From Selaginella moellendorffii (Eukaryota > Plantae > Lycopodiophyta): 64,000 nt of DNA. The notes under the pieces are model-generated. The model had not been told where the DNA came from and searched no databases. It saw nothing but the letters and a program-made list of their open reading frames with translations. The DNA is taken from positions 1,882,463 to 1,946,462 of the forward strand of contig NW_003314266.1 in the NCBI RefSeq assembly GCF_000143415.4, given 5' to 3'. Of the stretch, positions 1 to 26,785 are shown in pieces. How positions within the stretch are numbered: position 1 is the first letter of the stretch; the number at the start of each line of letters is the position of its first letter. A program made the position numbers and the translations under genes.

Positions 1-845
1 CTCGGACTTGGACTCGGACTCGGACTCGGACTCAGCCTTGGCCTCGGTCTCAGTCTCGATCCCGATCTCGGTCTTGGTTTGGATCTCAGTCTCGATCTCG
101 GTCTTGGTCTCAGTCTCGGTCTCGATCCCAGTCTCGGTCTCGACCTCGGACTCCATCTCAGGTCCTTCTCAGACTCCATCTCAGATTCCATCTCGGGTCC
201 ATCTCGGACTCCATCTCGGACTCCGTTTCGGTCCTTCTCGGACTCCATCTCAGGTCCATCATGAACTCCACCTTAGTCCATCTCAAACTTCATCTCGGAA
301 TCCATCTCGGACTCCATTTTGGACTCCGTCTTGGTCCACCTCGGACTCCATCTCGGACTCCGTCTCGGTCCATCTCGGTTCATCTTGGACTCCATCTCGG
401 ACTCCACCTCGGACTCCAACTCGGGTCCATCTCGGACTCCATCTCGGACTCCACCTCGGACTCCATCTCGGACTCCACCTCGGACTCCATCTTGGTCCAT
501 CTCGGACTCCATCTCGGACTCCACGTCAGACTCCAACTCAGTCCATCTCGGACTCCATCTCGGACTCCACCTCGGACTCCAACTCGGGTCCATCTCGGAC
601 TCTATCTCGGACACTTCCACGTGTCATGTGTTGGTCCTTTTGGGTCCCTTTTTGGAGCCTCGTTTTTTGCTCACTTCATGCTCGTTCCTTGAGCACTCCG
701 TTGGGAGTTCCACTCCTGCTCTCAACCTTTCAAGTTGGAGCCTTTTAGTCCAAACGTGTTACGCTCGTTTGGCTTTCGTTTTGGCCACCACCACGTGGCA
801 CCCTTTCGGCTCCACTTTTGGGGCCTAGGGATTTTGTGTCTCACA
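1..845 (-). repeat. 3' LTR (truncated by window edge) of non-coding LTR element A; contains CTCGGACTCCAT-type simple repeat array
   Basis: Near-identical to 5945-6708; ends ...TGTGTCTCACA; abuts PPT at 846-859 (ATGGGTGGTGGAGT on the minus strand). Confidence 0.9.
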
Positions 846-3800
846 ACTCCACCACCCATAGACGAAGTTCGATGTCCTCATCGAACAGTAAAACCCCTTT
901 TATATAATAACACATGCTTGTATTAGCATTTCCATCCTTGGCACCCAGCCAAAGTTTGTCAATGGTTTAACACTAAAGGCTCACTAGGCCTTATCCATCC
1001 TCTAAGGAGCTTAGTCTCTCCAACTTAGAGACTTACTCAACCACCTGGGGTCGTTTGCTCCCTTTTATTGGTTCAGTTCTCGCTAAACACATTAGAAACA
1101 CCCTCTCTAACTTAATTCCACTACTCATTCTCGAGTAGTTTCAAATTCCATTGCCATAACCTTTGCACTTTGGAACTTTTAATTTTGACTTCTCAAAGTC
1201 AATTTCCTAAGTGTCTCCGACACCTTACGTTGCACATGGTGCAACTCCACTTCCCTATCCTAAGAAGTTCTTTACTTGAGGGTACTATCATCCTCTCTCC
1301 GATATCGTGCCACCTTTGGCATTAAGTTCCAGTTATCATAATTGGTGCTAGAGCTGCCCACGGCCCTATTATTTGGCTACCTTAGCGCTCCCCCCTTTGG
1401 AGCATCCACTTTCGCCAAATTGGAGAAGTTGGGAATCCACTCTAGGGAAACATTGCCTTTCTCACAATCTGTTAGCACCCAACATATTAGTGTTCTCAGC
1501 ATAACTTTGCCATTTGGATTCTTTCCCATGATTCCCATGGCTCTTTTCTTAGCCACTAGTCTTTTGCTCCTATCCTTGATTGTTGCACCCAGCAACATAG
1601 GATTGCTACCTCCATTTTCGAAGTTTCGTTTCAGTTCCATAGCAAACACTTTGCTTTGCCAAGTCCAGCGGGTGTTCACCCCTAGTACGTCTCTTTAACA
1701 TTTTCTACTATGGGCTCTATCCACAGCCCAACTTTTGAAATCCTCCCTTGGATCTCTTATAGAGACTACCTTCCTCGGACTTACTATGCCACAGTATCGA
1801 CATAGCTCATTTCCCTTAGGTGTTCTTCCCACTTAGTTACCTTCACCAAGCCAAACCATTATCAATAGTTCAAATCAACACTTTAAACTAGGAATCATAT
1901 TCCTTAACCCAAACAAAGACTTTATCCTTGTTTAGCCACAAGATCACCTAGTGATCTCATCTTGACCCCTTAATAGGTGTACCAATAGGAACTAGGTCTT
2001 CCAGACCCCTCTACGTTGTTGACTATGACCCCGGGGGCATCCCTCACATTTGGAAGTGCGCCCAAGCCAGCCTTTCCGGCCAAGGATCCATAGCAACTGA
2101 GACTGGGTGTCCCCATCTCATTCACCACGTCCTTGGTGCCCTTTGCACCAAAGTGTTCAAATTAGATATGCCGAGCTTTCACTCTAAGCAATCTAACTGT
2201 GCATCACGACTCCGAGGCATCCCTCGCTTGGTGGTATGCCCAAACCAGTCTCCTCACTGAGAGTCCATGACCACCAAAATATGAGTGTCCTCATATTCCA
2301 AACCATCACCACGCCTTAGTGATTTGGGACTCGAACCCAAGCACTAGAGGGTTGGGACTTGAACCCAACCTCCGTATATGCATCTACGGATGGCATCGCA
2401 CAGGATGCCTGGCGTGACTCCACACGCCGGTGCACCAACTTATACTTAAAGCGGGTTATAGATCACAGCTTAGGAACCTAGTTCCTCGCACTACCAAGTC
2501 CTCTCACTTAACATGTCTGCGATCATGCATGGACTCCTCCATGCTCGGCCCACTAGGCCACCCCTTTGAAGTTAGCTCTTTTAACTAGGGTATTCGTTCC
2601 CCCCGACTTGCCAATCTCACTTAGCAAGTCATTTGGCCACCGTAACATGGTTCATGCATAAGCATGAAAGTCCTTAACCATTGACTTTCGTTCAAAGCCC
2701 TCTCTTTGAACACTTGGGAACTACTTCCCCAATCTCGATAGCCTCGCCTCATGGCAAGCTTCAAGACGACGTTTTTGTTGTGTCATTCTGATTTCGCGCG
2801 TTCTATAAACCATTTACACTTGGCTGTTTAGGTACTTATCTACCTAGGGGAACGTTCAAGGAACTTTGTTCCTTGGCTTGCTAAGACCTCTCCTCTCGCA
2901 AGCTTTCCAATTACCATATAGTCTAACATGGACAATCTCATGCTTTAGACTCTCTATGGCATCTCAATCTCTAATAACAACATGTTTGAGCACCCACTTG
3001 ATTCTCCACTCCTAACTTGCATAACCACTTTTGGTCATGCCTGTCAATTCCTATGGTTCGGTTTTATCCCTATACTATTTGCCTTTTGGCCTCATACATT
3101 TCCTTCAGTTATTCTCCTTCAGACTAGGAAGATAGCTTTGCACTTTCTACCATGCCTTGGCAAGTATTTATGGGGATGAACCTACCCTACAGCCTAGGGA
3201 GTGGTTCCTCAATCCGGGTTTGCTCACTTTGTAATCCCACACACTAGGATCACCATTGCTACTTATGGGCCTTTTATATGCCATCATTGGCTTTGCCAAA
3301 ATCCCTCTTTGGCTTTGTCCAATTTGGGTAGACGGACTTCTTCTATCTCCACAACCTTAGACATTTGGATAGCACCTCCTATCCTTCATTCGCTAGGGAC
3401 TTTGTCCCTTGGGCATTATCCATTGCCCCCATAACACCAAATACCCCCTTCTGGTGTTCTAGAGTGTTTGGGTGTTCCAATGATAGCCTCTCTGACAATG
3501 AGCATTCCTTTTTCGACATTGACTTACTATGTCGCAACATAAATAATTTATCCCTTATAAGGGTATATCGAACTTCCTTATCCCAATAAAAAGTCTTAGG
3601 TAGTTGCCTTCTACTAGTTTATGAATTATTTTGCACCTTTTGCTTAATTGCTTCATAGTTGTCAAGTCTTACAACTCATTGCTTAGTGCTTTCACACCTC
3701 CATCATTATCTGGGTCACCACACTCCAACCACATGCCTTCCAGCATAGACTATGCCATTCCCATTTCCATTGGGATTCCTTTGGCAAGGGGTTCTCATGA

Positions 3801-4897
3801 ACCTATCAACATAACCTCAAGGCATCACACCTTGGCCCATTTGGTGTCTCCACACCATCGGCTCCATGTGTCTGCCTTTATGACACTTTGCACTTGTGTC
3901 TAGGTCTTTGCTAAAACCAACCCAGTCGTTTCTCATGCCAACTATCTGTTAGCACTACACTATAGTGTTTGCACACAACTCTGCACCAAAGTTGCTTTTT
4001 CTATGAACACCTTTCCCAAGACTTGAGCATGGCACATTCTGCCATTGATGAAATACCCTCTGTTCTCATCCTTGGATCCTATGATCCCCCCCCATCATTC
4101 GTGGGGTACAACACACCTCAGTCCAAATGCTTCCATCAATCCTTCAGGATTATTCCTTGACTCTATTTAAGTCCTCCAGCTTTTTGGACTTTGTCATCCG
4201 ATGACCCATGAGGTCCCACTTTTGAGGTGCCAACTCACTGGAATACAATTTCTTGTATTCATGTCCTACTTACAAAGACCATCTTTGCAAGTGTTACTCC
4301 GACACTTGATTTGTTCTCTTGGGGCAACCTTTTGCCCCTTAGGACCACTTGTCCATATGATGAGAATACCAACTCATCCTCTAAGTACACCCCTAACTCC
4401 TTGGGTTGTTCTAACATTTATTAGAAGTAGCCCTGGCTACCATTTCAAGGACTTGTGTCCTCTTCCATATTTGACCTTCCATGGTCATTAATTCTGGTCT
4501 CAAATTCATGAGCACTAGCCTCAACTATATGAGGGTAATCTTGTGACTCCATTATCGTTTTAGAGTTTGCATCTTTCCCGTGATCCCAACTGTAGTTGTT
4601 TACCACAACTACATCAGCCAGTTTGCTAAGTCAAATGCTCATCTAGATCACATCCTCAACTCTCTAAGAAAACCCTTACACTGTTCCCAAGATCCCAAAG
4701 TCGTTCCCTTACTAGCCCTCTTCCATCCACTACATCATGCACAAGTTCACGCATGAATTTGAGTGGAGAGCCATGTCCTCTCGACATGCTACTCCTCGAG
4801 GATAGGTCCATATCTAGGACCTTCCAACTCCAATACAAGTGGTGATATGTTTGGCCATCAATAAAAGTCGGACTAAGGACCAGCTCTGATACCAAAT

Positions 4898-6708
4898 TGT
4901 ATGCAACTAAATTTTTATATTTTACTTTAGTCACTTAACCACACCTCCGACCACTTGGAGGAGTTTCACTCACAAAATCCATAAGTCCTATTTTGGACTT
5001 GGGCTTGCTAGCCCCAAGAATGGCATCTCTACCACTCAACATTTGCACTTGGTCCAAGTGCTCCACGTGTCTGATCTCATGACCGACACCCCAAGGTACC
5101 ACCGACACATCAGCCTGTTACACTAAGGCCATGCCCATTCACCTTGGTCACACTAGTGGTCTAACACCACCTACACCATAGTCCTGTCTCTCAAAGACTG
5201 GGCCATCCATCCATGAGTGATCATCTCAGATCCACTCCTTAGCATCCTTAGGATGCCCACAGACATGGGGAATGGCCTTCCCCAATATCCCCTTTTCGGT
5301 CCCCACCAAGTCCCTTTCTGTCCATGGCTGTGTTCGCCAACACTGCCACTGGATCAAAGCCCACAAGCCTGACCACTAAGTCCCACGGTCCTTTGGGACT
5401 TCCTCACCACATGATTGTATCTTTGGTCACTACACCAGAGGATTACTCTTCTTCCTTTCCACAGTCTGGGCCTTCATGACAACATTTCGGAACACCGTGG
5501 CCTTACGCAAGCCTCGTGGGTACTCTCCCCGCCTTCCGCCTTTGGGTGCTCTAGCCATGGGCTTAGAGCGAGGTCCCGTTGAGCCACGCCTGGTATCCAA
5601 GTAGGTAGTGCCACCCACACTTGGACTGGGAGCATCGGCCAGTCGATCTCCCGGGGGAACTAGAGCCGGCTCTTGAACACTTCACCAAGCTACCCTGCTT
5701 GTCAGTCTATGTTCACTTTAGTCTTGGACTTCCCAATGGGCAGCTCATCACCCAACACTAGGTATAGCCTTCCTAGGCCAAACTGGCCTTTCCTGGCCAA
5801 ACTGGCTCCACTGCAGTCCTCCCCCTTACTATACTTTTGGAGCTCACTAAACCCCCCAGGGTCTGGGAGACGAACGCTTTGGGCTTTCACCCTCTCAGAC
5901 TCGAACTCGGACTCGGACTCGGTCTCGGACTCGGACTCGGACTCAGACTTGGACTCGGACTCGGACTCAGACTCAGCCTCGGCCTCGGACTCGGTCTCGA
6001 TCCCGATCTCGGTCTCGGTCTCGGTCTCAGTCTTAGTCTCGGTCTCAGTCTTAGTCTCGGTCTCGGTCTCGGTCCCAGTCTCGGTCTCGACCTTGGACTC
6101 CATCTCGGGTCCTTCTCGGATTCCATCTCAGGTCCATCTCGGACTCCATCTCAGACTCCGTCTCGGTCCTTCTCGGACTCCATCTCGGGTCCATCTCGGT
6201 CCATCTCGGAATCCATCTCAGACTCCATTTCGGACTCCGTCTTGGTCCACCTCGGACTCCATCTCGGACTCCGTCTCGGTCCATCTCGGTCCATCTTGGA
6301 CTCCATCTCGGACTCCACCTCAGACTCCAACTCGGGTCCATCTCGGACTCTATCTCGGACTCCACCTCGGACTCCATCTCCGTCCATCTCGGACTCCAAC
6401 TCGGTCCATCTCGGACTCCATCTCGGACTCCACCTCGGACTCCAACTCGGGTCCATCTCAAACTCCATCTCGGACACTTCCACGTGTCATGTGTTGGTCC
6501 TTTTGGGTCCCTTTTTGGAGCCTCGTTTTTTGCTCGCTTCATGCTCGTTCCTTGAGCACTCCATTGGGAGTTCCACTCCTACTCTCAACCTTTCAAGTCG
6601 GAGCCTTTTAGTTCAAACGTGTTACGCTCGTTTGGCTTTCGCTTTGGCCACCACCACGTGGCACCCTTTCGGCTCCACTTTTGGGGCCTAGGGATTTTGT
6701 GTCTCATA
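4898..6708 (-). repeat. 5' LTR of element A
   Basis: Starts TGT at 4898 next to the PBS; ends GTCTCATA (CA mutated to TA); homologous to solo LTR 20819-22585. Confidence 0.9.
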
Positions 6709-7331
6709 GAAGTGTTGAATGCAACTATCAAGGTGCATTTCAATGATAACTTGCAAAAGGGGAACACAACGAGGTCAGGATCCACATTTAGCAAAGGGGC
6801 TAAACCAAGAGGGACATATGGCAAAAGGAAATTCAAGAAGAATTTCTTTAAGAATGAGTCCCCAGTGTCCGGGAAAGGCAGATTCGGTGGCCAACGAGCA
6901 AGTACATGGGGTAGTCAAGCAAAAAAAAACAAATCCACCAATAAGAAGGTCAAGTCTACTAGTAGCATGGGAAACAACATATGCTTCAATTGTGGTGAAG
7001 CAAGACACTTTTTAAGGGAATGTCTATACCCAAATAAGGCCAAAGCTAATATGGCCATTAAGTTGGGTGAAATCTAAATTAAGGTATGTGATCCAGTCCC
7101 TAACTCAAAGTTACTCATTACACGAGCAACTTTGTTAGAGAGTCGTTCACAACATCTACTAACCCTCCGAGGGAAGTTTGAAGGTAGCTTTGTTAAGATC
7201 TTTATTGACACAGATGCTTCAAATAATTTTGTGGCTACAAACATAGTTCGGCAAGCTGGACTAATAATGCAGCAACTGGGTGAACCAAGGACATTAGAGT
7301 TTGTTCAAGGTAGCCAAAGCACCGATGAGGT
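6709..7331 (+). pseudogene. Decayed gag C-terminus, zinc knuckle and protease of older chromovirus copy (element C, part 1)
   Basis: CFNCGEARHFLREC and KIFIDTDAS are homologous to element B pol; internal stop; interrupted at 7331 by element B. Confidence 0.88.
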
Positions 7332-8479
7332 TGTAAGCCACAAATTTTTCCTTTCCAATTTGCCAGCTTACCTCGTCTATCCGTCCAACACTGCCTTGGC
7401 TTTTGCTAAGTTCCCTTGCCAAGGTTCTCGCCTATGGTACCAGCTCCTACTTGGTTTCAGCTACTCACTGCACGAGCAACGGAGTGTTAGCCATCCTTCC
7501 ACGAATTCCCAAATCACTCCCAATCCCCCTCCCCGGGTTAGACTGGACTTAAGGTTCGGCTACACTCCCCGCAAGCACAAGCAGCCAAGCACACCAAGCT
7601 TCCAGGTTCCTAACATCCCTTGGTACCACAAGACTTGATCATGGGACCCTCTAAATCCCAAGTCTTGAGTGCAACATTTGCTTCGGGACGCCGGGGCGAA
7701 ACACCATGGCCTAACGGCCCGGTATGGGTACCTCTCGCCCCCCACTTCCATCCCAAAGGAAGGCCCAAGCCCCTAGGAAGGGCGAGGACCAATGAGCCGC
7801 ATGGTACTCAAGTGGGGCACCACTCCACATGAGCCGGGAGCACCGCAATCGGTTTCCCTTTCGGGAGTGGGAGCTACTCTTGAGCACTTCCTTGGATGGC
7901 CCCTCCGGCACCAGCCAAGTCCATGCTCACTCCCACCCAAGGCCCCTTAGTCCCAGTCCCAACCTCAAGTCGGTTTGGAAGCCCAACTGGAGAGTCCCTT
8001 CAAAACTGGTTCCTGGACCTCACTATCCCTACTATACTTTTGGAACCCCCTGCAGCCCCCCCCCCCTGGGGGACGCACGCTTTGGGCTTTCACCCCTTGA
8101 CCCATATTAGTATTTGGACTTAGTCTCTGGCTCGATCTCGGATCCGATTTCGGATCCGACTTCGGATTCGGTCTCGGACTCGATCGCGGACTCGATCTCG
8201 GACCCGATCTCGGGCCCGACCTCGGACTCGACTTCGGACTCGGTCTCGGACCCGATTTCGGATCTCGGACTCCGTCTCGAACTCGGTCTCGAACTCGGAC
8301 TCGAACTCGGTCCCCGAGTCGGTCTTGGACTCGATTCCGGACTCTATCTCGAACTCGGTCCTAGAGTCGGTCTTGGACTCGATCTTTGACTTGGTCCCAT
8401 CCGATGAACTCTTTGTCATTTTGGTCATGCTTTCGGGGTTCCCTTAGCCTACGACACCTCGGCGAGTTGGTTCCTTACA
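7332..8479 (-). repeat. 3' LTR of element B
   Basis: About 99% identical to 13719-14843 (8 substitutions seen, a 24-bp indel in the CTCGGA repeat, a 1-bp poly-C indel). Confidence 0.96.
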
Positions 8480-8536
8480 ACTCCACCACCCATAGAAGAA
8501 GTTCGATGCCCACATCGAACGTCTCTTTTTTTTATC

Positions 8537-8800
8537 CTACGACTTGTTGACCATGTCTCCGGGGGCATCCCCCCACTTAGCGGTGTGCCTAAGTTAGCCT
8601 CCCCGGCCAAAAGCTCATGACAACGGAATATAGGTGTCCCTATACTCCTCCCCTCACCACGCCCTAGTATGGGGTCGGGACTTGAACCCAGCCTTGCTTT
8701 ACTAGGGGGTTGGGACTCGAACCCAACCTCCGTAGAATACGTCTACGGTTTCGACATCCCCGCAGGGAGTCGAGCGTAGCTCCCTACGCCTGGTCGACCT
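8537..8800 (-). ncRNA. Candidate structured cis-RNA in the 3' non-coding region of element B (cloverleaf-like domain with two T-loop hairpins and a GACA-loop hairpin)
   Basis: Hairpins with compensatory changes between elements A (2020-2440), B and C (16490-16775). Confidence 0.6.
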
Positions 8801-8884
8801 AGCTAACCCATGCTAATTAGCTTACCTTCGGCGCGCCTTCGGGTCCCAACATATGCCATTGCTCAACTTCTCAATTTGATACTT

Positions 8885-11800
8885 TTAATTGAACTTTGCA
8901 TAAGTACATAGAGTTCTGCCATGCAGAAATTCCTCCACTAGATCTCGCGTGTTCGCTAGGTTCTCCTCCGGTTCCCATGTTGCTTCGCAGTGTGGAAATC
9001 CTTTCCACTTCACATGGAACTCTCTCACCTCGCGTCCTTGTCGTTTGCTCTTGCGCGCATTGAGGATTGCCTCGACTTCGTATTCCTCCTCCCCTTGGAT
9101 AACCTCAGGTAAAGGTCTTACTTGGTCCTTGCGAAGCAGATCCTCAAAATACGGCTTGAGTAAGTTCACGTGGAACACGGGATGCATCTTCCCCATCTCT
9201 CGAGGAAGTCGGAGACGGTAAGCCACTTTACCGATTCGAGCCTCAATCTCGTAAGGCCCCGCGAACCTGCTTAAGGAACTCAAGATCAATTCATTTACAG
9301 GAATACATGCATTTTTACCTTTGGGTCAACTTCCGGCTGATCCCACTTGGTAGCCTGAGGTTCTTGGTGTTCAGCCACACCTTCTCCCCAGCTTGGAACT
9401 CCACATCTCGACACTTTTGGTTCGCGTACTTAGTTTGCCTTTGTTGAGCCCGTTCCAAGGAATCCCTCACTAGATTCCAAATGTTGAGTCTTTCCGCCAT
9501 GAATGCCTCCACTGCGGGTAACTCTCCATGATACTCGGCCACGCCGAGTTCCACAGGACCTTCAATAGCTCGCCCATTGATGACTTCCCATGGACTCACC
9601 CCGATGCTCGAATGTGGTGAGTTGTTATAACACATTTCCGCAAGTCCCAAATGACTTACCCAGTCGGTCTGGTCTCCCGAGACATAGCATCGCAAATAAT
9701 CCTCCAGCTGCCTATTCACCCTTTCCGTTTGTCTGTCTGTCAAGAAGTGTTAGTGCCATCAATCTTGACTCAATACCCATTACCTGTCTGTGGGTGATAG
9801 GCCGTGCTGAATTTCAACTTGGTGCGATACTGTTCTAGGAGTGTCCTCCAAAACCTACTGGTGAAGATCTTATCTCGATCTGAGATAATCTCTTCCGGCC
9901 TTCCCCGCACTCGAACCACTTGTTCGAAGAACAGCTTCGCCACACCTTCCGCATCCACATCCGTTGTGGTGGGTATGAAATGTGCCATCTTTGAAAATCG
10001 GTCCACCACCACGAATATCGCATCGAACCCCTCGCTTGGGGGTAGTCCCGTGATGAAGTCCATCGTGAGACATTTCCACAGACGATCTAGAATGGGGATG
10101 CTTTGCAACAAGCCCCCACTAGCCTTCGTCACGGCTTTGACCTGCTGACATGTTGGATATGTCTTTACATAGTCTTGGACGTCCTTAGCCATATCTGGCC
10201 AGTGATACTTCCTTTTGAGTAAGCCCATCGTCTTGGGCACTCCGCCGTGTCCCGCGAGAGGTCCGTCATGACACTCTTCCAAGGCTACTTTTCTTAGTTC
10301 CCCTTCTGGAACATACACCCTCGTTTGCTTGTAATATATGAGTCCGTTGCGTTCCGCATAGCCCGTTTTCTCTTTCGTTGGCAGCTCACCTCTCTGGTGA
10401 GCTTCCCGTGCCTCCAGATTCCTCAGCAACACTTCTTGTGCTAGACCATCACTCTCGTATGCGGTCCGCACATCGTCCCAAAAGGTTGCTGTCGCGCTAG
10501 ATATCGCCAACTTCAAGCTCGCTTTTCGACTTAGCGCATCTGCCACGATGTTGCTCTTCCCAGGCTTGTACAGGATCTCGCAATCAAACTCGGCCAAAGC
10601 ATTGGCCCACCAACCTTGTTTTCCCCTTAGGTCGGGCTGTGACAAGAAGTGTTTCGTTGCCACATTGTCCGTGTAAACCTTGAAGTGTCTCCCAAGGTAG
10701 TGTCGCCACTTCTTGAGCGCCTTGACCACCGCAAACAATTCCTTCTCGTGGGCAGGCCACTTCCGTTGAGCCTTGTCCAGCTTCTTCGAGAAGAACGCTA
10801 CTGGATGGTTGTCTTGCTTCAAAACTACGCCCAACGCAAAGTCCGAAGCATCCGTGTCTACCTCAAAGTCTTTACCAAAGTCTGGTAATGCCAACACCGG
10901 AGCCTTCCTCAACTTCCCTTTGAGGTGGACGAATGCCGCCTCGCATTCCGCTGTCCATACCATCTTCCCTTTTCCTGTTTGGTCCGTTAAGGGCAGGGCT
11001 ACTCTCGAATAGTGTCTGATAAACTTTCGATAGTAGTTGCATAGCCCTAGGAACGCCCTCAACTCATGTACATTCGATGGTCGTTCCCATTCCTGGATCG
11101 CTTGGACCTTCTCCGGGTCCACCTTGAGCCCGTCCTGGCCCACCACATGCCCGAGAAACTTTACCTCTTGTTGAGCAAAGTCACATTTGCTCTCTTTAGC
11201 ATACAGTTTGTGTTCCCTTAGTTTCTCAAACACCTTCGCCAAGTGTTCGGCATGCTCCTCTAGCGTCTCGCTATAGATCAGGATGTCGTCAATATAGACG
11301 ACCACGAAGCGATCCAGATAGGGTACAAAGATGTGGTTCATCAACGCCGAAAACGTTGCCGGCACATTGCACAGCCCAAAGGGCATCACCAAAAACTCAA
11401 AGCTCCCATACCTCGTTTGACAGGTTGTCTTCTCGACATCTTCCTCAGCTACCCTGATCTGGTAGTATCCTGACCTTAGGTCAATCCTCGAGAAGTATTT
11501 TGCCTTTCCCAACCTATCGAACAGGTCTTCGATCCTTGGCAAAGGGTACTTGTTCTTCTTGGTATACTTGTTGAGCAACCGGTAGTCTATGCACATGCGC
11601 ATAAATCCATTTTTCTTTTTCACAAATAGCACCGGCGCCCCATACGGCGACTTGCTCAACCTAACATACCCTTTGTCCACCAACTCCTCTAGTTGGCTCT
11701 TGAGCTCCTTGAGTTCTTTTTCGTTCAATCGATAGGGTGGACGAACCACCGCCTCAGCACCCTCGACCAGCTCAATCTTATGTTCTATCGGTCGTGCGGG

Positions 11801-12637
11801 GGGCAACCCCGCCGGTAGCTCCTCTGGCATGGTATCCTGGAATTGGTCCAGCACCTGTTGGATCACTAAAGGTACTTCTTCTGTTCTTGTCTTTTTGTCA
11901 CTCTTCACCGAGAGTAAGCACAAAAAGGCTGCCTTAGTTCCTTTAGTGAGTTGTCCTCTCGTGGACACCAGGTTTAAGCATGACTCTTTGGCCTTGCTTT
12001 GCCCTACCTTTAGATCCTGGGCCTCCACCCTAGATCTTCTTCCTTGGGCATTCGCCAATACCACAAGGTTCCTACCTTGTCCATGCAGGGCTACCACGAA
12101 CCGATTAAACCAATCCATTCCGAAGATCACGTCAAATCCCGCCATGTCCAAGACGGTGAAATCCATGTCCACTTTCCATGTCCCCACTTCGACTCTCGCT
12201 TGTCGAAGTATCTCATCAGTGCTTTGGCTACCCTGAACAAACTCTATAGTCCTTGGTTCGCCTAGCCGCTGCACCGTTAGTCCAGCTTGCCGGACTATGT
12301 CTGCAGCCACAAAATTATCCGAAGCACCCGTGTCAATAAGGATCTTAACAAAGCTACCTCCGAGCTTCCCTCGGAGGGCTAGTAGATGTCGCGAACGACT
12401 CTCTACCAAAGTTGCTCGTGTAATGAGTAACTTTGAGTTAGGGACTGGATCACATACCTCAGTTTGGACTTCACCCGACTTGATGGCCATATTGGCTCTG
12501 GCCTTCTTCGGGTAGGGACATTCCCTCGAGAAGTGTCCCGCTTCGCCGCAGTTGTAGCATACGTTGTTGCCCACGCTGCTATACGACTTGACCTTCTTAT
12601 CTTTGTGGGTTTGTCTTTTTTCGCTTGACTTCCCCAC
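8885..12637 (-). CDS. pol: Pol polyprotein (zinc knuckle, aspartic protease, RT, RNase H, integrase, chromodomain); integrase split by two predicted introns (9737-9783, 9267-9318)
   Basis: [34 protein letters not shown] zinc motif, [18 protein letters not shown]...VKWKG...TWEPEENL; splicing gives [12 protein letters not shown] and KLTQRFAGPY. Confidence 0.9.
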
Positions 12638-13659
12638 GTACTCGCTCGCTGGCCACCGGCTTTGCCTTTCCGGAACCCCGAGGACTCATTCTTAGAGAAA
12701 CTCTTCTTGAATTTCCCCTTGCTATATGTTCCCCTCGGTTTGGCCCCTTTGTGAAACGTGGATCCCGACCCCGTCATGTTCCCCTTTCGCAGGTTATCGT
12801 TGAAATGCACCTTGATGGCCGCATCCAACGCTTCCTTGTAGTTGGTCGGGTTCCAGCGCATCACCTCACCGCGAGCCCAGGTTTGCAAACCTGATATAAA
12901 GGCATGGAACGCATCCATATCCCCCATGTCCGTGACAAGTATCCTCTTTGCCATGAACCCATTCACATATTCCTGGATGGTTCCAGTCTGCTTCAGCCTA
13001 CTCAACTCATCTCTCAGATGCAGAGTGGCATTCGGAGGAACGTATGTCGCGCGGATCCTCGCCTTCATCATGTCCCAGGTGGCCACCGGTCCTTCGTTGG
13101 CCTCCGTTGTTCTCCACCAAGACTTGGCATTATCTGCCAAGTATGGTTTTGCACATGGGACCTTCACCGAGCTCGGTAACCGCAACGCTCGGAAGTAGTC
13201 CTCCATATCGTAAAACCAATCCTCCACAACATTATAGTCATTCACTCCCTTGAACACCGGTGGGGGCTTTGGTTTGTACTTGGGAACTGCCTGAGGGACT
13301 GATTCCACTTCGGTCTGTTCGACCTTGTCTGGTTTTGCCTCAGTCCCTGCCGAAGGGTCCGCACCTTCTGCGCTGCCAGCATCCGCAGTCTTTCGCTTTT
13401 TCTTCCGCTTCTCGTCACGCTTTAACTTGCGTACGAGAGTCTCCAGCAGGGCATTGGTCTGTGCCAACTGTCCTTCTAGCACGTCCAATCGAGCCTTGGA
13501 CGACCGAACCTCGCCACCGGACTCCTGTTTGGAAGTTTCCTCACTGGAGTCCTCCTCATGCAAGGATTCCTCATCCATAGCCTTTTGTTCAACCGGAGGC
13601 TCCAGCTCCGGCGGAGGTTCCGTCTCCGCCTGGGTTCGCTTACGCCCTGCCCTTGCCAT
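12403..13659 (-). CDS. gag: Gag (retrotransposon capsid)
   Basis: 418-aa ORF just after the PBS with Retrotrans_gag motifs ([21 protein letters not shown]). Confidence 0.9.
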
Positions 13660-13718
13660 CTCCCAGCAATCCGCCTCTATCCTTCGCTAGAACTGAGATA
13701 AAGGCTCCGATACCAAAT

Positions 13719-14843
13719 TGTAAGCCACAAATTTTTCCTTTCCAATTTGCCAGCTTACCTCGTCTATCCGTCCAACACTGCCTTGGCTTTTGCTAAGTTC
13801 CCTTGCCAAGGTTCTCGCCTATGGTACCAGCTCCTACTTGGTTTCAGCTACTCACTGCACGAGCAACGGAGTGTTAGCCATCCTTCCACGGATTCCCAAA
13901 TCACTCCCAATCCCCCTCCCCGGGTTAGACTGGACTTAAGATTCGGCTACACTCCCCGCAAGCACAAGCAGCCAAGCACACCAAGCTTCCAGGTTCCTAA
14001 CATCCCTTGGTACCACAAGACTTGATCATGGGACCCTCTAAATCCCAAGTCTTGAGTGCAACATTTGCTTCGGGACGCCGGGGCGAAACACCGTGGCCTA
14101 ACGGCCCGGTATGGGTACCTCTCGCCCCCCACTTCCATCCCGAAGGAAGGCCCAAGCCCCTAGGAAGGGCGAGGACCAATGAGCCGCATGGTACTCAAGT
14201 GGGGCACCACTCCACATGAGCCGGGAGCACCGCAATCGGTTTCCCTTTCGGGAGTGGGAGCTGCTCTTGAGCACTTCCTTGGATGGCCCCTCCGGCACCA
14301 GCCAAGTCCATGCTCACTCCCACCCAAGGCCCCTTAGTCCCAGTCCCAACCTCAAGTCGGTTTGGAAGCCCAACTGGAGAGTCCCTTCAAAACTGGTTCC
14401 TGGACCTCACTATCCCTACTATACTTTTGGAACCCCCTACAGCCCCCCCCCCCCTGGGGGACGCACGCTTTGGGCTTTCACCCCTTGACCCGTATTAGTA
14501 TTTGGACTTAGTCTCTGGCTCGATCTCGGATCCGATTTCGGATCCGACTTCGGATTCGGTCTCGGACTCGATCGCGGACTCGATCTCGGACCCGATCTCG
14601 GGCCCGACCTCGGACTCGACTTCGGACTCGGTCTCGGACCCGATTTCGGATCTCGGACTCCATCTCGAACTCGGTCCCCGAGTCGGTCTTGGACTCGATT
14701 CCGGACTCTATCTCGAACTCGGTCCTAGAGTCGGTCTTGGACTCGATCTTTGACTTGGTCCCATCCGATGAACTCTTTGTCATTTTGGTCATGCTTTCGG
14801 GGTTCCCTTAGCCTACGACACCTCGGCGAGTTGGTTCCTTACA
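13719..14843 (-). repeat. 5' LTR of element B
   Basis: Adjacent to the PBS; followed by TSD GAGGT. Confidence 0.96.
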
Positions 14844-14848
14844 GAGGT

Positions 14849-16985
14849 ACTTTGACAAACAAGAGTCGAAGTAAGGACATGGAAAGTAGATATGAATTTC
14901 ACCATATTGGATATGGCTGGATTTGACGTAATCTTTGGAATGGATTAATTCAATCGGTTTGTGGTAGCCCTACATGGACAAGATAGGGCTTGTCCTATGT
15001 TGTCCTAGTGTCCAGTGTCCAGGAAAAGAACAACTCACTAAAGCAACCAAGGCAACATTTTTGTGCTTACTCTTGATGAGGAGTGACAAAAAGACAGAAC
15101 CAAAAGAAGTACCTTTAGTGATCTAGCGGGTGTTTGACCAATTCCAATTTACCATGCTAGAGGAGCTACCAACTGGGTTACCCCCCAAACGACTAATAGA
15201 ACATAATATCGAGCTGGTCGAAGGTGCTAAGGCAGTGATTTGTACCTCCTATCAGTTGAACGAAAAGGAACTTGAAGAGCTCAAATGCCAACTTGAGGAG
15301 TTAATGAAAATAAGTTAAGCAAGTCACTGTATGGTGCACTAGTGTTATTTGTGAAAAAAAAAAGATAGATCTATGTGCATGTGCATAGACTACCAATTGC
15401 TCAACAAGTATTCAAAGAAGAACAAGTACCCTTTACCAAAGATTGAGGACTTATTTGATAGATTGGGAAAGGCAAAATACTTCTTAAGGATCGACCTAAG
15501 GTTAGGATACTACCAGATCAAGGTAACAGAGGAAGATGTCAAAAAGACAACCTATCAGACAAGGTATGGAAGCTTCAAGTTTCTAATAATGCCCTTTGGG
15601 CTATGCAATGCACCAGCAACGTTTTTAATGTTGATGAGCCATATTTTTGTACCCTATCTGGATCACTTCATGATCATTTACATTGATGACATCTTAATTT
15701 ATAGCGAAACGCTAAAGGAGCATGTTGAACACTTGATGAAGGTGTTTGAGAAATTAAGGGAACACCAACTGTATGCTAAAGAGAGCAAATATAACTTTGT
15801 TTAACAAAGGGTAAAGTTTCTCGGGCATGTGGTGGGCAAAGACGGGCTCAAGGTGGACCCTAACAACAAAGGCAAACTAAATATGCGAACTAAAAGTGCT
15901 GGGATGTAAGGTTTAAACCTGAAAAGAAGGTGTGGCTAAACACCAAGAACCCAAGGCTACCAAGTGGGATCAGCCGAAAGTTGACTCAAAGGTAAAAATA
16001 CATATATTCCTGTAAATGAACTAATCTTGAGTTCCTTGAGCAAATTCACAGAGCCTTACGAGATTGAGGCACGAATTGGTAAGGTGGCTTACCGCCTCCG
16101 ACTTCCTCGAGAGACGGGGAAGATGCACCCTATGTTCCATATGAACTTACTCAAACCGTACTTTGAAGATTCACTTCGCAAGGACCAAATAAAACCTTTA
16201 CTTGAGGTTATCAAAGGGGAAGAGGAATACAAAATTGAGGCCATCCTTAATATGTGTAAGAGTAAATGACAAAGATACGAGATGAAGGAATTCCATGTGA
16301 AGTGGAAAGGATTTCCATACTGCGAAACAACATAGGAACCAAAGGAGAATCTAGCAAACGCACGGGATTTATTGAAGGAATTTTTGCAAGGTAAAACTGC
16401 ATGTACTTATTCAAAGTTTAATTAAAGAATTTATTTTGAGAAATTGAGCAATGTTGTATGTTGAGACCCAAAGGCATGCCGAAGGTAAGCTAATTAGCAT
16501 GGGTTAGTTAGGTCAACTAGGCGTAGGGAACTATGCCCAACTCCCCATGAGGATATCGAATCCGTAAACATATTTTACGGAAGTTAAATTCAAGTCTCAA
16601 CCCTCTAGTAAAGCAAGGCTGGGTTCAAGTCCCAACCCCATACTAGAATGTGGTGAGGGGAGGGGTATAAGGACACCTATATTCTATTGTCATGGGCTCT
16701 TGGCTGGGGAGGCTAATTTAGGCATATTGCTAAATGGGGGGATGCCTTCAGAGACATGATCAACAAGTTGTAGGATTAAAAAAAGGTGTTTGATGTGGGT
16801 ATCAAACTTCTTTTATGGGTGGTGGAGTTGTAAGGAACCAACTCCCCGAGGTGTCGAACGCTAAAGGATCCCCAAAAGCACAACCAAAATGATAAAAAGT
16901 TTATCAGATGAAACCAAATCTAAGATCAAATCCAAGACCGACTCTGAGACCAAGTTCAAGACCAAGTCCGAGATCGAGTTCAAGA
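14849..16985 (+). mobile_element. Element C part 2: decayed PR/RT, large deletion of RH/IN core, GPY and chromodomain, structured 3' region, PPT, start of 3' LTR (16829)
   Basis: Homologous to element B in the opposite orientation; many stops; deletion junction near 15860; TGTAAGGAACC follows the PPT. Confidence 0.88.
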
Positions 16986-16989
16986 ACTC

Positions 16990-19043
16990 TATTTATGGAT
17001 GATAAACATTTATAATAGTGTGGTGTATCCCTAGCCAAGGTGTTAAATATAAAATTCCTCAACCATAAATGTGGGACTATTATCCAAGAGAATCTGCTCT
17101 AGATAAGATTGTTGGAACACCACTTGATTGAGAAGGAAGTATTCAACAGCAGTTGCAAATACACTAGTAAGACCACCAACTTCCACCAAGTGAGTCAAGT
17201 AATTAAAAGCAATAATGATATATGTAAGCTCCTAAATTTGAACTTCCCGAGAGGTCACCTAGCTAGTACTATTCAAACTCAAGGACACCCAAATATCCCA
17301 AGACCCTTAACCGATTGGAAAAAGGGGTGCACTTTTGTTCATGGGCACTTTCCCTTTATATTTAAACCCCATGGATCGTCTCTCAAGTCGTTCCCTTTGG
17401 TTGCTTACAATCCACCATGCTTCCCTACAAGTTCATGCCCTAGTGAACGGAAGCTGAGATCCACAGCTCTCCCGAAAGCCTCACTCTCTTGACACCTTAC
17501 TCTTCGGGTCGAGCCTAGCAGGAGCAAACTGGACCAACCAGCTCTCAATCAACATGTGGTGTGATTCTCTTAACCACCCAACAGAGTCAGACCCAAGACC
17601 TCTGTGATTCCCTTAGCCAACCAACAGAGTCGGACCCAAGACCTTTCTAATACTAAATGTAAGCTCTTGAATTTAAACTTCCCAGGAGGTCACCCAGCCC
17701 AATACTATTCAAACTCAAGGATGTTTAACCCCAAATATCCCAAGACTTTTAACCGATTGGAAAAGGGGGTGCACTTTTGTTCATGAGTCCTTTCCATTTA
17801 TATTTGAACCCTATGGATCATCTCTTAAGTCGTTCTCTTTGGTTGCTTACAATATACTCATTGCCAGTAGTCGACCATAGAAAAAACCCTATTAAATAAA
17901 ATGTTATCAATTCAAATAAATGGGAAATTAAAATTGACTCTAACTATCCTTCTATAACACGAGAAGAGTATTACGAGCTTGGCACAAAAGATAGTTATAT
18001 ACATACTAGATAACATCATATTGCATCTCCAGTAAATAGAAAGACCCTGTGTATACGATGATGTTTTAAATGCCCACATAGAATAGGAGAATCATAGTAA
18101 GTATAAAGAAACCGTGGAATAAAGATTGAAAGCACCACCAGCCATAAATGATCATTAAAATCTGTGCCCACAAAATAAATAAGGTCGTCTTTAAAGCAAT
18201 ATTGAGAATGTAAGTGCTAAAATGGCAAGTCATTAGTAAGTGATGCAAGATTCTTAAATCCATCATAAAGCTTTCAAATCTAAGGATTAACTTTTTAAGT
18301 TTTATAAACCTCATCAAATAAGGTAAATCTTGTTCCACACCTTATAGACACTTAATATTAAGTACAATAACCATAAATGGTATAGAATCCTTGTCTAGAA
18401 AATCTATAAACACTAGAATAATAAGCTGATCAAGAACAACGAAGAAGGGAGAGAAGCTCGAGAAAGGGTATTAACATTTACTATAAAACTCTATATGCAA
18501 TAAATAACTTTAAAATCATATATCTGAAACTTCAAGGTCAAATAAACAATACAATAATAATGTTTTTTTGCTTCAATAACAAAGTTATTATAGAGTAGTT
18601 CAACTCTGCTAGTTGATGTATATAATGGGATGGTGCTAACAAGGCACACTCGAACTCTCTTGCATCAACATACCTTTAATACTAATATCAAAAACATCCA
18701 TATGTAAAATGAAAAGTCAAATGTTGTCAGGATATACCAAGATTAAAAGAGTCATTCATAGCTCTTTAGGATCCGTAAATGCCCGCTCACAGCCTACAAA
18801 CCAAATGAAACACAATGTTAACAACTTCAATAACATTTACAATCATGTAATATAATTAGAAAGATGATCAACAAAATAATTGAGATATTACATATTGCCT
18901 AAAAATCATTACACATCATTTACACACTTTAGAGTATGGAATTTTAGAACAGCCACAGGTTTGTCATAATCAATTTACAAACTTTCATAAAAAATATAAT
19001 ACCTTACCCTTCAACTGCTTCAACTTTAAACCAACTTCCAACA
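16990..19043 (-). pseudogene. Highly decayed gypsy RNase H/integrase remnants (different family)
   Basis: Similar to 19772-20480 and, inverted, to 35135-36250; no intact ORF. Confidence 0.55.
17223..17851 (-). mobile_element. Cassandra-like TRIM with 5S rRNA-derived LTRs
   Basis: ~190-bp TG...CA LTRs at 17223-17409 and 17658-17851; TSD ATATA on both sides; minus strand reads GTTAAACATCCTTGAGTTTGAATAGTATTGGGCTGGGTGACCTCCTGGGAAGT, matching the plant 5S A-box/IE/C-box region; degenerate PBS and PPT. Confidence 0.88.
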
Positions 19044-19771
19044 TATAAAGAACCAACTCCCTAAGGTGTTTTAGGCTAAAGGATCCCCAAAAGCATGACC
19101 AAAATGATAAAGAGTTCATCGGATGAGACCAACTTCGAGATCAAATCCAAGACAGACTATAAAACCAAGTTCGAGACCGAGTTTAAGATCAAGTCCAAGA
19201 CCAAAGGCCACCCAAGGAAGTGCTCAAAAACAGCTCTCACTCCTAGAAGGGAAACCGACTACAATGCTCCCGGCTTATGTGAAGTGGTGCCCCACTTGAG
19301 TACCTTGCAGCTCATTGGTCCTCACGCTTCTTAGGGGCTTAAGCCTCCCCTTTGGGATGGAAGTGGGGGAGTATGGGTACCCATACTGGGCTGTTAGGCC
19401 ACGCTGTTTCCCCCCGGTGTCCCAAAGCAAGTGTTACACCCAAGACTTGGGATTTAGAAAGTTTCATGATCAAGTTTTATTGTATCAAGGGATGTTAGAA
19501 ATCTTGAGGCTTGGTGTGTTTGTGGGGAGTGTAACCAAACCTTAAGTCCAGTCTAACCTGGGGAGGGGGATTGGGAGAAATTTGGGAATCCATGGATAGA
19601 TGGGTAACGCTCTATTGCTTGTGCAATGAGTAGCTGAAACTAAGTAGAACCAAGTAAGAGTTAGTACAATAGGCAGGAGCCTTGGCAAGGAAGCTTTGCT
19701 AAGACTAAAGCAGTGTTGGTCGGATAGACAAGGTAAGTTGGTAAACTGAAAGGAAAAATTTGTGGCTTACA
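19044..19771 (+). repeat. Degenerate, internally deleted LTR of the element B/C family
   Basis: Starts TATAAAGAACC (from TGTAAGGAACC) and ends TTTGTGGCTTACA; no matching TSD seen. Confidence 0.8.
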
Positions 19772-22700
19772 TTCACGTACTTTGCGATCATCCCTTTGAA
19801 TGTCTGAATGAGCCTTTCCACCAAACTGTCTGACTGTGGGTGATAAATACTCATGAAAGTTTGTAGTATCTCTAACCGAAACGTCAAAACATGAAATGCC
19901 TCAGCCATAAATGCAAGACCATCATCTGAAAAAATCCACTTTAGACAAGATTGCTAGAATACCACTCATTTAAGGAAGAAGTACCTAACAATAATTGTGA
20001 AGGTGCTAGCAAAAACACAAACTTCCACCCAATAAGTCAAGTTTCTTAAAACTCCAAACTCCTGCTAAACACTCCTTCTCTATCGTGGAGTAATTCACCT
20101 CCACTAGTTGTAATATACAGTTGATGTATGCAATAGGATGACATTAACCAGGCACACTCGGGCTCTCTTGCATCAATACACGTCTAAGACCAATATCAGA
20201 AGCATCCACGTGCAAAATGAAAGGTCAACTGTAGTCAAAATACGCCAAAACTAGAAAAGTTGTTAATATCTCTTTAAAATCCATGAACACCCACTCACAA
20301 TCTGCAGACCAAATAAAAGATGATGTTGATGACTTCAACAACACTGGCAACAGTGTAGTGCAATCAAAAAAATGATCCATAAAACAACTAAGATACTACA
20401 CCTTGCTTAGGAAGTGTTGCATATCATTCACACACTTCAAAGTAGGGAACTTTAAAACAGCCACAAGTTTGTTAAGATCAACTTTGTAAACTCTCATAAG
20501 AAATATAGTACTTAAGATAAGTCGAGTCCTTAAACCTAAACACGCACATCAATTGCTTCAACTTTAAACCAATGTCCCGTAAATGATCCAACACTTTACA
20601 AACATTACAAATGTGTTCCTCCCATGTCCCCTCTGAGTGGATCAAAACATCATCAATGATGTTAGTAGTCATTTCTGTCATATCACAAAGAACTTCATCC
20701 ATCATCTGCTAAAAAATCTTTAGACCGCTATTCAAACCAAACAACATCACCAAGAATTTGTATAAACCAAATGGTGTACAAAAAGAAGTTTTAGGAATAT
20801 CACCTTTGGCCATCAGTATGTGAGACACAAAATCCCTAGGCCCCAAAGTGGAGCCGGAAGGGCGCCACGTGGTAGTGGCCGAAGCGAAAGCCAAACGAGC
20901 GTAACACGTTTGGACTAAAAGCTCCGACTTGAAAGGTCAAGAGCAAGAGTGGAACTCCCAACAAAGTGCTCAAGGAATGAGCACGAAGCGAACAATAAGC
21001 AAGGCTCTAAAAAGGGACCCAAAAGGACCAACACATGACACGTGGAAGTATCCGAGATGGACCCAAGTTGGAGTCCGAGGTGGACCCGAGATGGAGTCCG
21101 AGATGGACCCGAGTTGGAGTCTGAGGTGGACCCGAGATGGGGTCCGAGATGGAGTCCGAGATGGACCCAAGATGGAGTCCAAAATGGAGTCCGAGATGGA
21201 GGCCGAGATGGACCCGAGTTGGAGTCCAAGGTGGACCCGAGATGAAATCCGAGATGGACCCAAGATGGAGTCCGAGATGGAGTCCGAGATGGACCCGAGA
21301 TAGAGTCCAAGATGGAGTTCGAGATGGACCCGAGATGGAGTCTGAGATGGAGTCCAAGATGGACCCGAGATGGAATCCAAGATGGAGTCCGAGAGGACCC
21401 GAGATGGAGTCCGAGGTCGAGACCGAGACTGGGACCGAGACCGAGACCGAGACCGGGACCGGGACCGAGACCAAGACCAAGATTGGGACCGAGATCGAGA
21501 CCGAGGCCGAGGCCGAGACCAAGCCCGAGTCCAAGTCCGAGTCCGAGTCCGAGTTCAAGTCCAAGTCTGAGAGGGTGAAAGCCTAAAGCGTTCGTCTCCT
21601 AGACCCTGGGGGGTTTGGTGAGCTCCAAAAGTATAGTAAGGGGGAGGACTACAGTGGAGCCAGTTTGGCCAGGAAAGGCCGGTTTGGCCAGGAAAGGCCG
21701 GTTTGGCCTAGGAATGCTGTACCTAGTGTTGGGTGATGAGCTGCCCACTAGGAAGTCCAAGACTAGAGTGAACACAGACCGACAAGCGGGGTAGCTTGGT
21801 GAAGTGTTCGAGAGCTGGCTCTAGTTCCCCCGGGAGATCGACTGGCTAATGCTCCTAGTCCAAGTGTGGGTGGCACTATCTACTTGGATACCAAGTGTGG
21901 CTCAACGGAACCTCGCTCTAAGCCCATGGATAGAGCACCCAAAGGCGAAAGGCAGGGAGAGTACCCATGAGGCTTGCGTAAGGCCACGGTGTTCCGAAAT
22001 ATTGTCCCAAAGGCCTAGACTGTGGAAAGGAAAAGGAGTAGTCCTTTGGTGTAGTGACCAAGGATACAATCATGTGGTGAAGAAGTCCTAGAGGACCATG
22101 GGACTTAATAGACAAGCCTATAGGCCTTGATCCAGTGGCAGTGTTGGCGAACACAGCCATGGGCAAAAAAGGACTTGGTGGGGACAAGAAAGAGGATATT
22201 GGGGAAGGCTATTCCCCATGTCTATGGGCATCCTAAGGATGCTAAGGAGTGGATCTAGGATGATCACTCATGGATGGATGGCCCAGTCTTTGAGAGACAG
22301 GACTGTGATGTAGGTGGTGTCAGACCACCGATGTGACTAATGTGAATAAGCATCGCCTTAGCATAACGGGCCAATATGTCGGTGATACCTTGGGGTGTCA
22401 GTCATGGGATCGGACACGTGGAGCACTTGGACCAAGTGCAAAGGTTGAGTGATGAGGATGCCATTCTCGGGGTTAGTAAGCCTAAGTCCAAAATAGGACT
22501 TATGGAGGTTGTGAGTGAGACTCCTCAAAGTGGTCGGAGGTGTAGTTAAGTGACTAAAGTAGAATGGAAAAATTAGTCGCTTACACAGTACTTTCTAGTA
22601 CCTAAAAGCAAGATTTAGCTTGGTGAATTAACAACTTCTCCTTAGACAATATAAGAGATGAGCAATGTGAAGAAGAGGGTACACATCAGTGATCGTCACC

Positions 22701-24800: not shown

Positions 24801-25590
24801 ACAAATTAAAAGTTAAACTTTTTTATTCAAGAAAAAAATTAAAATATATTCATATTAACATTAACTTATTTAAATGTTAAAATAGTTTAACATTTAATAA
24901 GTTTTCAATAATTCAATATATTTCTTGGATCTTCTACTCAACATTAGGTTAGAACAAATCCTAAAACAATAAACTATGTTATGTTGTGTTACTTGATGAT
25001 AAACATAAAAATATATAAATTATTGAAAATTTATTTAAGGTTTTATAATTAAATATGTAAATATTTAAAAACTTTGCTCTGCATTGCATGTAACAACGCT
25101 TGGTGTGCTTAAAAGTAGTGTTATTCCTACTTATTAATCTAATTAATCAAATAAAATTTATCATTATAAGCATATTTGTAATTTATAAATTTAAAATTAA
25201 TCTTATTGCATATCAACAATTAGATGGTAGAATAAAAAAGAATATACTTGAAAGGGTTTAAGAAAGTTTATAAATTATAAATACAAGATTAATCTAAATG
25301 AATAACAACTGTTAAATGGTAGAATTTCCTAGAATATCCAAGCATATTCTAGGTATATCCACTATCATCTTGCTTAAGCAAACCAAAAATAAATTAATAA
25401 ACATTCTTCAGTACATATAACACTCCTGTCCAAGTTTGATAGCAAGGATAAATACTATAATTTTTTGTCCCACTAATTCATTAATTTTACATAAAGAAAT
25501 CCTATATAAATAAAACAATTATAGTTGTCTAGCCATTTTATGAAGGAACCAACAACTCAACAGACCAATTACACCAAGAAATATTTATAC

Positions 25591-26681
25591 TCATGAAGCA
25601 AGAGAAACGAGAATTTGTCGCTCCCTGGACAAGCATTTCTCCCTTGAGTGTAGAACAGCAGAGTTGTCCACTAAAAGGATGTCACCTTTCTCCCATGGAA
25701 ACGCCACCTCTTCCTCAAGCATTATCTCCACGAGTTCATCGGCAGCTTGATCTTCGAGCAGCGTTCCATCTTCAAATTTGAGCGTTGTTCCAGGCAAATC
25801 TTTGTGCTTCTTGCGGACCTCCACTAAGAAACCAAGGGCCGAGAAGAATGCCATCCTTCCAGCCGTGTCCTTTCTAAACAAGGGAGCCACTGGTTTTGTC
25901 TCGAGAAACACTCCTCCGTCCGGATGCCAAGTCAGACCAATGTTCTTTTCCGCGGCCCTGTATCATCGAAGGAAAGATTTGATGAGTGAGCCCCACGGAT
26001 TAAACTTGAACAGAGGACGTTTCTTACTTGATCTCGGCAGATTGCTTGTCACCGGCTGAAAGTCGTGACTTCCAGGCGTTCTCGCTTAAGAAAGAGCAGT
26101 GAACAATGCGCCCTTTGTCGAGAAGTTGCTCTGCTAAGTGATCTCTCTCAAGAATTCGCTTGTAAACGACGTGACCTGGAACAATCGGAGTGGCTCCTCC
26201 AGTTCCAGGGTCTGGAGGTTTCTCCGCAAAAAAGACGACCTTTGCCGGTGGTTTCTCAAGCTGGAACACGAAGAACAATTAGAAAAAAGAAAAAAAGAAA
26301 AGATCTTACATAAGCTGCCTCGTTGTGGTAGCCAAGGTACCAATCCAGCGGGAAATCATTGGCAGTGAAAACCTTTCCAAAGACTTTCTTTCGATAAGCC
26401 CCTCCACCCATCTCCAAGTAAGGGTACTCCTCCCATCCCAGCGCATCGATTATGGAGTCAAGCTCCTGCGCTGTCCATACCTCAAATCCTCGCAGCAAAA
26501 CCGCGCCACTCTTGACTAGCCATTCCTCCAGCCGCGATCGCTGCTCCTCAATTCGCAGCGCGCCAGCGAGCGCTCCAGCGTCCTTGGGAGATTCATGGGC
26601 GGGAGCGAGGACCAGCGGGAATGGCGATCCATCCTCGAGCTTCTTCTGGAAAGGGAGGGATACTTGCGAGAAGGAAGCCAT
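25591..26681 (-). CDS. TauD/clavaminate synthase-like Fe(II)/2-oxoglutarate dioxygenase, copy 1 (exons 26681-26310, 26260-26028, 25957-25591)
   Basis: GAVLLRGF, YHNE (HxE), GGATP, WEKGDILLVDN, LHSR; GT-AG introns keep the frame. Confidence 0.9.
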
Positions 26682-26785
26682 GATTGTGCCACGACTTTTA
26701 AGAGCTCTAGTTGTATTATAGCATTATTGACTTTTGAGTCCTCGCAACCTCTGTTCTCAAGCAGGCGGAACTCGCTTGTTACGTT

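Follow-up and report, generated by a model that had tools for sequence, protein, structure and literature searches.

LTR retrotransposons make up most of many plant genomes and, to our knowledge, their packaging and other cis-acting signals are almost unknown. In animals, the RTE of IAP and the constitutive transport elements (CTEs) of simple retroviruses are folded, multi-hairpin RNAs that are needed in cis and occupy the same place in the genome as the domain described here (PMC2674570). In the bipartite primer-binding site (PBS) of Ty3, segments of a Ty3/gypsy 3′ UTR work together with the T and D arms of the primer tRNA, which sets a precedent for 3′ UTR elements that act in cis with that tRNA (PMC4974528). 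Helenus (TRIMp3) is an LTR retroelement whose tRNA-derived piece is part of a miniature element's LTR and has been read as a Pol III promoter; this placement of tRNA-like sequence is the closest published parallel to our observations (PMC10886601). Full-text searches of the literature turned up no LTR retrotransposon described as having tandem T arms in an internal domain.

Here we analysed a 64,000-nt stretch of the Selaginella moellendorffii genome (hereafter the window) and found a folded RNA domain with two tRNA-style T arms in the 3′ UTR of a complete chromovirus, element B, and again in a non-coding element, A. Like CTEs and the RTE, the domain lies between pol and the PPT, but it has no sequence or covariance-model similarity to them at E ≤ 10 and its host is a plant rather than an animal. 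We know of no CTE or RTE that uses T-arm look-alikes. The Ty3 3′ UTR segments are complementary to the tRNA, whereas the hairpins of B have the same sense as a T arm. Unlike the tRNA-derived piece of Helenus, the domain avoids the LTRs of A and of B, is part of the 3′ UTR in B, and is also carried by an autonomous element. It resembles class II tRNAs and viral 3′ tRNA-like structures in having two canonical T arms, a long hairpin at the place of the variable arm and sub-threshold ARAGORN cloverleaves, but it differs from both in having no credible acceptor stem, 7-nt anticodon loop or 3′ terminus. Two T-loop-type sequences close together also recall the interdigitated double T-loops that bind tRNA elbows in T-box stem I, RNase P and the L1 stalk. 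This comparison, drawn in the first-pass annotation, concerns the letters of the loops: in the known RNAs two five-base T-loops interlock in one stem, whereas the predicted secondary structure places the two seven-base loops found here on separate hairpins, 15–22 nt apart. The retention of one folded domain in an autonomous element and in the non-coding element that partners it is a direct pointer to a cis-acting signal, and T-arm mimicry, if true, would tie that signal to the primer tRNA of reverse transcription.

The first 22 kb of the window consist of nested LTR retrotransposons. The main features of element B are as follows:

7331–14843, minus strand: element B, a complete Ty3/gypsy chromovirus with LTRs and a 5-bp target duplication
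13703–13715, minus strand: PBS of B, three bases after the 5′ LTR
12403–13659, minus strand: gag of B, an open frame of 418 aa
8885–12637, minus strand: pol of B, with zinc knuckle, protease, RT, RNase H, integrase and chromodomain
8545–8830, minus strand: folded 3′ UTR domain of B, about nine hairpins (from the hairpin inventory, the alignment with A and C, and the pair table)
8480–8520, minus strand: PPT of B with an 8-bp hairpin alongside, immediately preceding the 3′ LTR

The two LTRs of B (7331–8479 and 13718–14843) are 97% identical and the element is flanked by the 5-bp target duplication. Pfam searches identified gag, zinc knuckle, protease, RT, RNase H, integrase and a C-terminal chromodomain; this set of domains identifies B as a Ty3/gypsy chromovirus, in keeping with its LTRs, PBS, PPT and target duplication. 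The pol gene is split over three frame pieces and therefore contains at least two frame changes. It overlaps gag in a different frame, which may reflect a programmed shift or a further break. The zinc knuckle is of the CCHC type and is encoded in a pol piece. Only about 43 nt separate the PBS from the start of gag. Given this layout of a complete element, the domain lies inside the span of the predicted B transcript, within a 405-nt 3′ UTR between the pol stop (8885) and the PPT. It starts about 60 nt past the pol stop and extends for about 260 nt, which leaves about 25 nt between it and the PPT-adjacent hairpin. A coding reading of the domain was ruled out because stops occur in all three frames.

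Within the domain, we distinguished the following hairpins in B:

8773–8790, minus strand: H1, with a G-rich tetraloop and one compensated pair relative to A
8751–8773, minus strand: H2, matched in A by a hairpin at the equivalent place with wholly different stem letters
8730–8748, minus strand: H3, which abuts the first T arm
8708–8728, minus strand: first T-arm hairpin, with a 7-bp stem and a 7-nt T-loop, identical to the A copy at 20 of 21 positions
8673–8693, minus strand: second T-arm hairpin, with a stem of 4–5 bp and competing alternative pairings
8561–8648, minus strand: H6–H8, 3′ of the bounds given in the first-pass annotation and carrying five of the six compensated pairs

The first-pass annotation had placed the structure at 8655–8805; the conserved fold is about 110 nt longer on the 3′ side and about 25 nt longer on the 5′ side. 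The five hairpins that it quoted from B (sense is the minus strand, 8790 to 8677) and the five from A (2428 to 2326) are all present as written. Each element has two T arms, which combine a G-C closing pair with a UUCRAGU loop and form the part of the domain with the highest sequence conservation between A and B. The first T arm differs at a single one of its 21 positions, compared with about 68% identity for the rest of the domain. The 13-nt core GGGTTCRAGTCCC, allowing up to one mismatch, occurs five times in the 64 kb, compared with 0.11 matches expected from shuffles, and all five fall in elements A, B and C. The whole 21-nt T arm likewise has five matches in the window, compared with 0.00 expected.

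Some smaller features of the hairpins vary among copies. The fourth, purine position of the T-loop is swapped between the two arms, being G then A in B (8708–8728 and 8673–8693) and A then G in A (2350–2370 and 2322–2342). The letters of the H3 loop differ among the three copies (8730–8748, 2371–2390 and 16561–16581), and each of these loops contains a short self-complementary run, 6 nt long in A and 4 nt in B and C. The H3 loop thereby resembles a dimer-contact loop, a likeness that could be due to chance.

The other two elements that carry the domain, A and C, comprise the following features:

1–6708, minus strand: element A, non-autonomous, with 5′ LTR 4897–6708, 3′ LTR 1–845 and interior 846–4896
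4882–4894, minus strand: PBS of A, with two differences from that of B
2198–2440, minus strand: A copy of the domain, with T arms at 2350–2370 and 2322–2342
2011–2133, minus strand: second, partial copy in A of the 3′ half of the domain, without T arms
846–886, minus strand: PPT-plus-hairpin block of A, 93% identical to that of B
6709–19771, plus strand: element C, a remnant with B nested inside it
16490–16765, plus strand: decayed C copy of the domain (from the alignment and pair table)

The LTR of A is 1.8 kb long, the 3′ LTR (1–845) being cut by the start of the window. The interior of A, about 4 kb long (846–4896), gave no tblastn match to the proteins of B and no Pfam match, and is without detectable coding capacity. 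Sensitive blastn of the A and B interiors returned only three matches: the domain (68% identity over 257 nt), the partial second copy in A and the PPT block (41 nt, 93% identity). Between the PBS and the PPT, A thus shares with B only domain sequence by blastn, and the leader of A is unrelated to that of B. The earlier statement that the two interiors have little else in common was therefore near the mark. The two elements also resemble each other in their PBS and in roughly the final 20 bases of the LTR (the LTR tips). As A has no coding capacity yet has B-like LTR tips, PBS and PPT, it plausibly depends on B-type proteins, and from its sequence it looks like a non-autonomous partner that has retained only cis-acting parts, the domain among them. 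The domain of A does not adjoin the PPT but lies about 1.3 kb from it. The partial copy of A corresponds to hairpins H6–H8 and is 72% identical to B, with the letters of the H6 loop unchanged and a different stem. Element C belongs to the B family and has lost its 5′ end; B is nested inside it, its 3′ LTR has been interrupted by at least one further insertion, and at least one large deletion has removed internal sequence. A decayed copy of the domain had been noted in C and does exist (16510–16660), its first T arm having lost three pairs.

Our leading, though tentative, interpretation is that the domain is a putative cis-acting signal on the full-length RNA, most likely one for selection by Gag or Pol. 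A signal of this kind, read by the proteins of the family, is favoured because A keeps the domain, B has almost no leader and the leader of A is unrelated. The short gap between PBS and gag in B and the unrelated leader of A also leave few other places for a shared selection signal, and the absence of a reading frame in A makes a translation-linked role unlikely. A search for long-range pairing between the domain and the 5′ leader found only chance-level 8-mers that were not homologous between A and B.

From the position of the domain, its conservation, its stem-preserving substitutions and its lineage restriction, the last two described below, we infer a binder and the consequences that its binding would have. 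A tRNA-like sequence, of which a long variable arm and a T arm are still recognisable, would probably have been captured by the element, and its T arm would then have been duplicated. The domain would act in cis on the full-length transcript, and the family's Gag or Pol would select genomic RNA through it for particles and reverse transcription; the RNA of the non-coding partner A would be selected by the same mark. Of the roles considered, packaging and assembly of the priming complex seem the most likely. The predicted contact points are the T-arm mimics and the G-rich loop of H1, in which two Gs are kept in all copies. CCHC zinc knuckles bind exposed G-rich loops. By analogy with D-loop/T-loop contacts, the H1 loop could also dock on a T loop. 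A more specific version, which we consider doubtful, is that the tandem T-arm mimics take the place of the primer tRNA on the surface where Gag-Pol, or a host tRNA-handling protein, normally holds it; a captured tRNA fragment would then serve as the selection signal, and A would be carried along through the same mimic.

The main alternative is that the domain is a post-transcriptional element that promotes nuclear export or stability of unspliced RNA, comparable to the transport elements found between pol and the PPT of some animal retroelements; it ranks first among the alternatives because a mouse element has its transport element at the same position, in the order pol, RTE and ppt in IAP (PMC2674570). 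A multi-hairpin architecture would suit such an element, and a non-coding partner would need one, which fits its retention in A. We nevertheless regard this reading as somewhat unlikely, since no such Rfam family matches at E ≤ 10 and the strict conservation of letters in the two T loops would be left unexplained. Export receptors for tRNA, moreover, read mature tRNA ends, which an internal hairpin does not have.

To return to the putative selection signal, part of the argument for it is that the stems have been preserved while their letters changed. Hairpins H1 and H3–H8 of B supplied 57 pairs, of which 54 could be compared in A after alignment with MAFFT. H2 was omitted from these counts because its stems, which form a hairpin from different letters in the two elements, could not be aligned base by base. 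The comparison drew on three copies representing two independent lineages (A, and B with C). A forms 50 of the 54 B-defined pairs, compared with 30–49% when the partners are slid by 1–3 columns, even though stem columns are only 75% identical and 25% of stem bases therefore differ. Relative to B, 35 pairs are unchanged, eight have a one-sided and six a two-sided change with pairing kept, one is gained and four are lost. When the observed substitutions were re-dealt by permutation among stem positions of the same base, 10.4 lost pairs were expected compared with the four observed (P = 1e-4) and 2.1 compensated pairs compared with the six observed (P = 0.006), both of these P values being optimistic because the hairpins were defined on B after A had been seen to fold alike and because H2 was omitted. 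The first-pass annotation had described the same order of hairpins in the autonomous and non-autonomous elements, with stems that differ but still pair, and these counts agree with it. In the decayed copy C there are six G·U and six A·C pairs, a symmetry that neutral decay predicts. For the domain as a whole, RNAalifold suggested a long-range closing helix.

Folding energy was also considered as evidence of selection and was dropped because the elements are comparably structured throughout. The 300-nt regions of A and B have z-scores of about −4 and the module window has a z-score of −3.2, but 150-nt windows slid along the whole elements average −1.5 and reach −4.7 in B, and average −2.2 and reach −6.0 in A. 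The patterns of substitution are more telling than folding energy with regard to selected structure.

The first-pass annotation had likened the layout to D, anticodon, long variable and T arms, but dedicated searches did not bear out a cloverleaf. In 601-nt searches around A and B, the Rfam tRNA family (RF00005) had no match at E ≤ 10, and a scan of the whole window at Rfam gathering thresholds gave no match at the domain. The matches that did appear at E ≤ 10 around A and B were at chance level (nadA at 16 bits and Tymo_tRNA-like at 14.7 bits). The Tymo_tRNA-like match (RF00233) was found in A only, with E = 1.7 and a score of 14.7 bits against a gathering score of 40; with a score this low and an internal position, the domain is not a viral 3′ tRNA-like structure. 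ARAGORN at default settings reported nothing at the domain, its sole call in the window being a tRNA-Arg at 62740–62813. At a 90% threshold it drew a weak class-II-like cloverleaf at homologous places in B (8794 to 8700) and A (2439 to 2341), although it assigned the arms differently in the two elements and gave acceptor stems with mismatches or mostly wobble pairs. The H2 loop, of 4 nt in B but 6 nt in A, is not a 7-nt anticodon loop. Among the features of a tRNA, the domain has the T arm with its G-C closing pair and T-loop, but neither a passing finder score nor a credible acceptor stem together with a 5-bp anticodon stem and 7-nt loop. The likeness to tRNA is confined to the two T arms, and the domain as a whole is not a tRNA. 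It is likely to be of tRNA-derived origin, with only the T arm, in duplicate, having been kept intact.

We also investigated how widely the domain is distributed. Five relatives, from a liverwort, a Closterium alga and three further contigs, were fetched by means of the protein encoded in the window and share 45–52% pol identity with B. None has a T-loop hairpin within 3–4 kb of pol or any similarity to the domain. A T-arm domain is therefore not a general requirement of chromoviruses and, judged from these sequences, it looks like a lineage-specific addition. Searches of a protein collection reached at most 53% identity with B pol and 52% with its chromodomain piece, so that B proteins have no close relative there, and B gag had no exact match. 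A covariance model, R1, built as a profile of the three natural copies without a consensus sequence and used for searching only, recovered nothing but its own training copies from the window and the relatives. A scan of metagenome and viral contigs with a tandem T-loop pattern returned unrelated loci, about half of which overlap tRNA or tmRNA genes. The 8-bp hairpin next to the PPT, by comparison, is also present in two relatives (L122, about 8358–8400, and L147, about 6010–6050) whose pol is only 45–47% identical, which makes it far older than the T-arm domain.

These results bear on a second alternative, namely that the domain is a neutral relic: a piece of a tRNA or of a tRNA-derived SINE, captured once and then inherited or exchanged by A and B. 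The homologous placement of the sub-threshold cloverleaf in the two elements would fit such a history, as would the lack of the motif in all five relatives, the unremarkable folding energy and the clear decay of copy C. Against neutral drift stand the loss of only 4 of 54 pairs, with six compensated, at a level of divergence where a quarter of stem bases differ between A and B, and a first T arm with a single difference in a domain that otherwise retains about 68% identity, while everything else in the two interiors has diverged past detection. We therefore consider a relic unlikely.

A third alternative acts at the level of DNA: the T-loop cores would be B boxes to which TFIIIC is recruited, and they would mark a chromatin boundary or belong to an internal Pol III promoter that drives a short RNA. 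The B-box pattern is known from tRNA genes, and both cores, which are the most conserved letters of the domain, fit it. Examined as a type-2 Pol III unit, the domain contains this pattern twice, but it has no convincing conserved A box, and B alone has a downstream T run, with none in A or C. The first-pass annotation had proposed a TFIIIC site; that the domain is a conserved Pol III unit is unlikely given the distribution of the T run, and a B-box function would in any case leave unexplained the compensated stems of H1 and H6–H8 and the swapped H2. We consider the DNA-level reading as a whole improbable. A tRNA-like tag for movement of the transcript between cells or through the phloem is highly improbable, since the idea rests purely on analogy with tRNA sequences in plant mRNA UTRs and viral tRNA-like structures reported as transport signals (PMC8660857) and the domain is not a full tRNA.

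T-arm-like repeats were also encountered in metagenome contigs. The best outside match of model R1 (30 bits) lies on a 1.4-kb contig (L082, about 960–1130, minus strand), where about seven T-arm hairpins repeat in tandem every 30 nt, ahead of an A-rich tail; this array is not the same domain. In five other contigs (L004, L027, L028, L045 and L049), a protease-RT-RNase H frame that is 23% identical to B pol has a tandem T-loop match 1.6 kb upstream of it, 4.7 kb downstream of it, or both, and the repeat may there be located in an LTR. A further contig (L073) carries T-loop repeat arrays at both ends (69–587 and 6384–6521), in opposite orientation.

The LTRs in the window have a repeat structure of their own. 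Arrays of 11–12-nt tandem repeats occupy the U3 of the LTRs of A, of B and of a third, A-like LTR; inside the LTRs, A and B resemble each other in these repeats alone, at about 70%:

1–621, 5888–6514, 8044–8367, 14444–14743 and 21017–21411: U3 repeat arrays

Further copies of the A-family LTR, 84–89% identical and without a domain-bearing interior, are found at 20819–22585 and at 34220–35141 (plus strand). The remainder of the window contains large PPR genes, a catalase exon, a GATA factor and the tRNA-Arg, and is interrupted by a run of 745 N at 26786–27530. Identity of the catalase piece to entries of the protein collection does not exceed 86%, the best named matches being from a fern and a moss. 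It also includes an 11.5-kb tandem duplication (25563–33800 compared with 37108–45340, 96–100% identical) that carries two large PPR genes on opposite strands.
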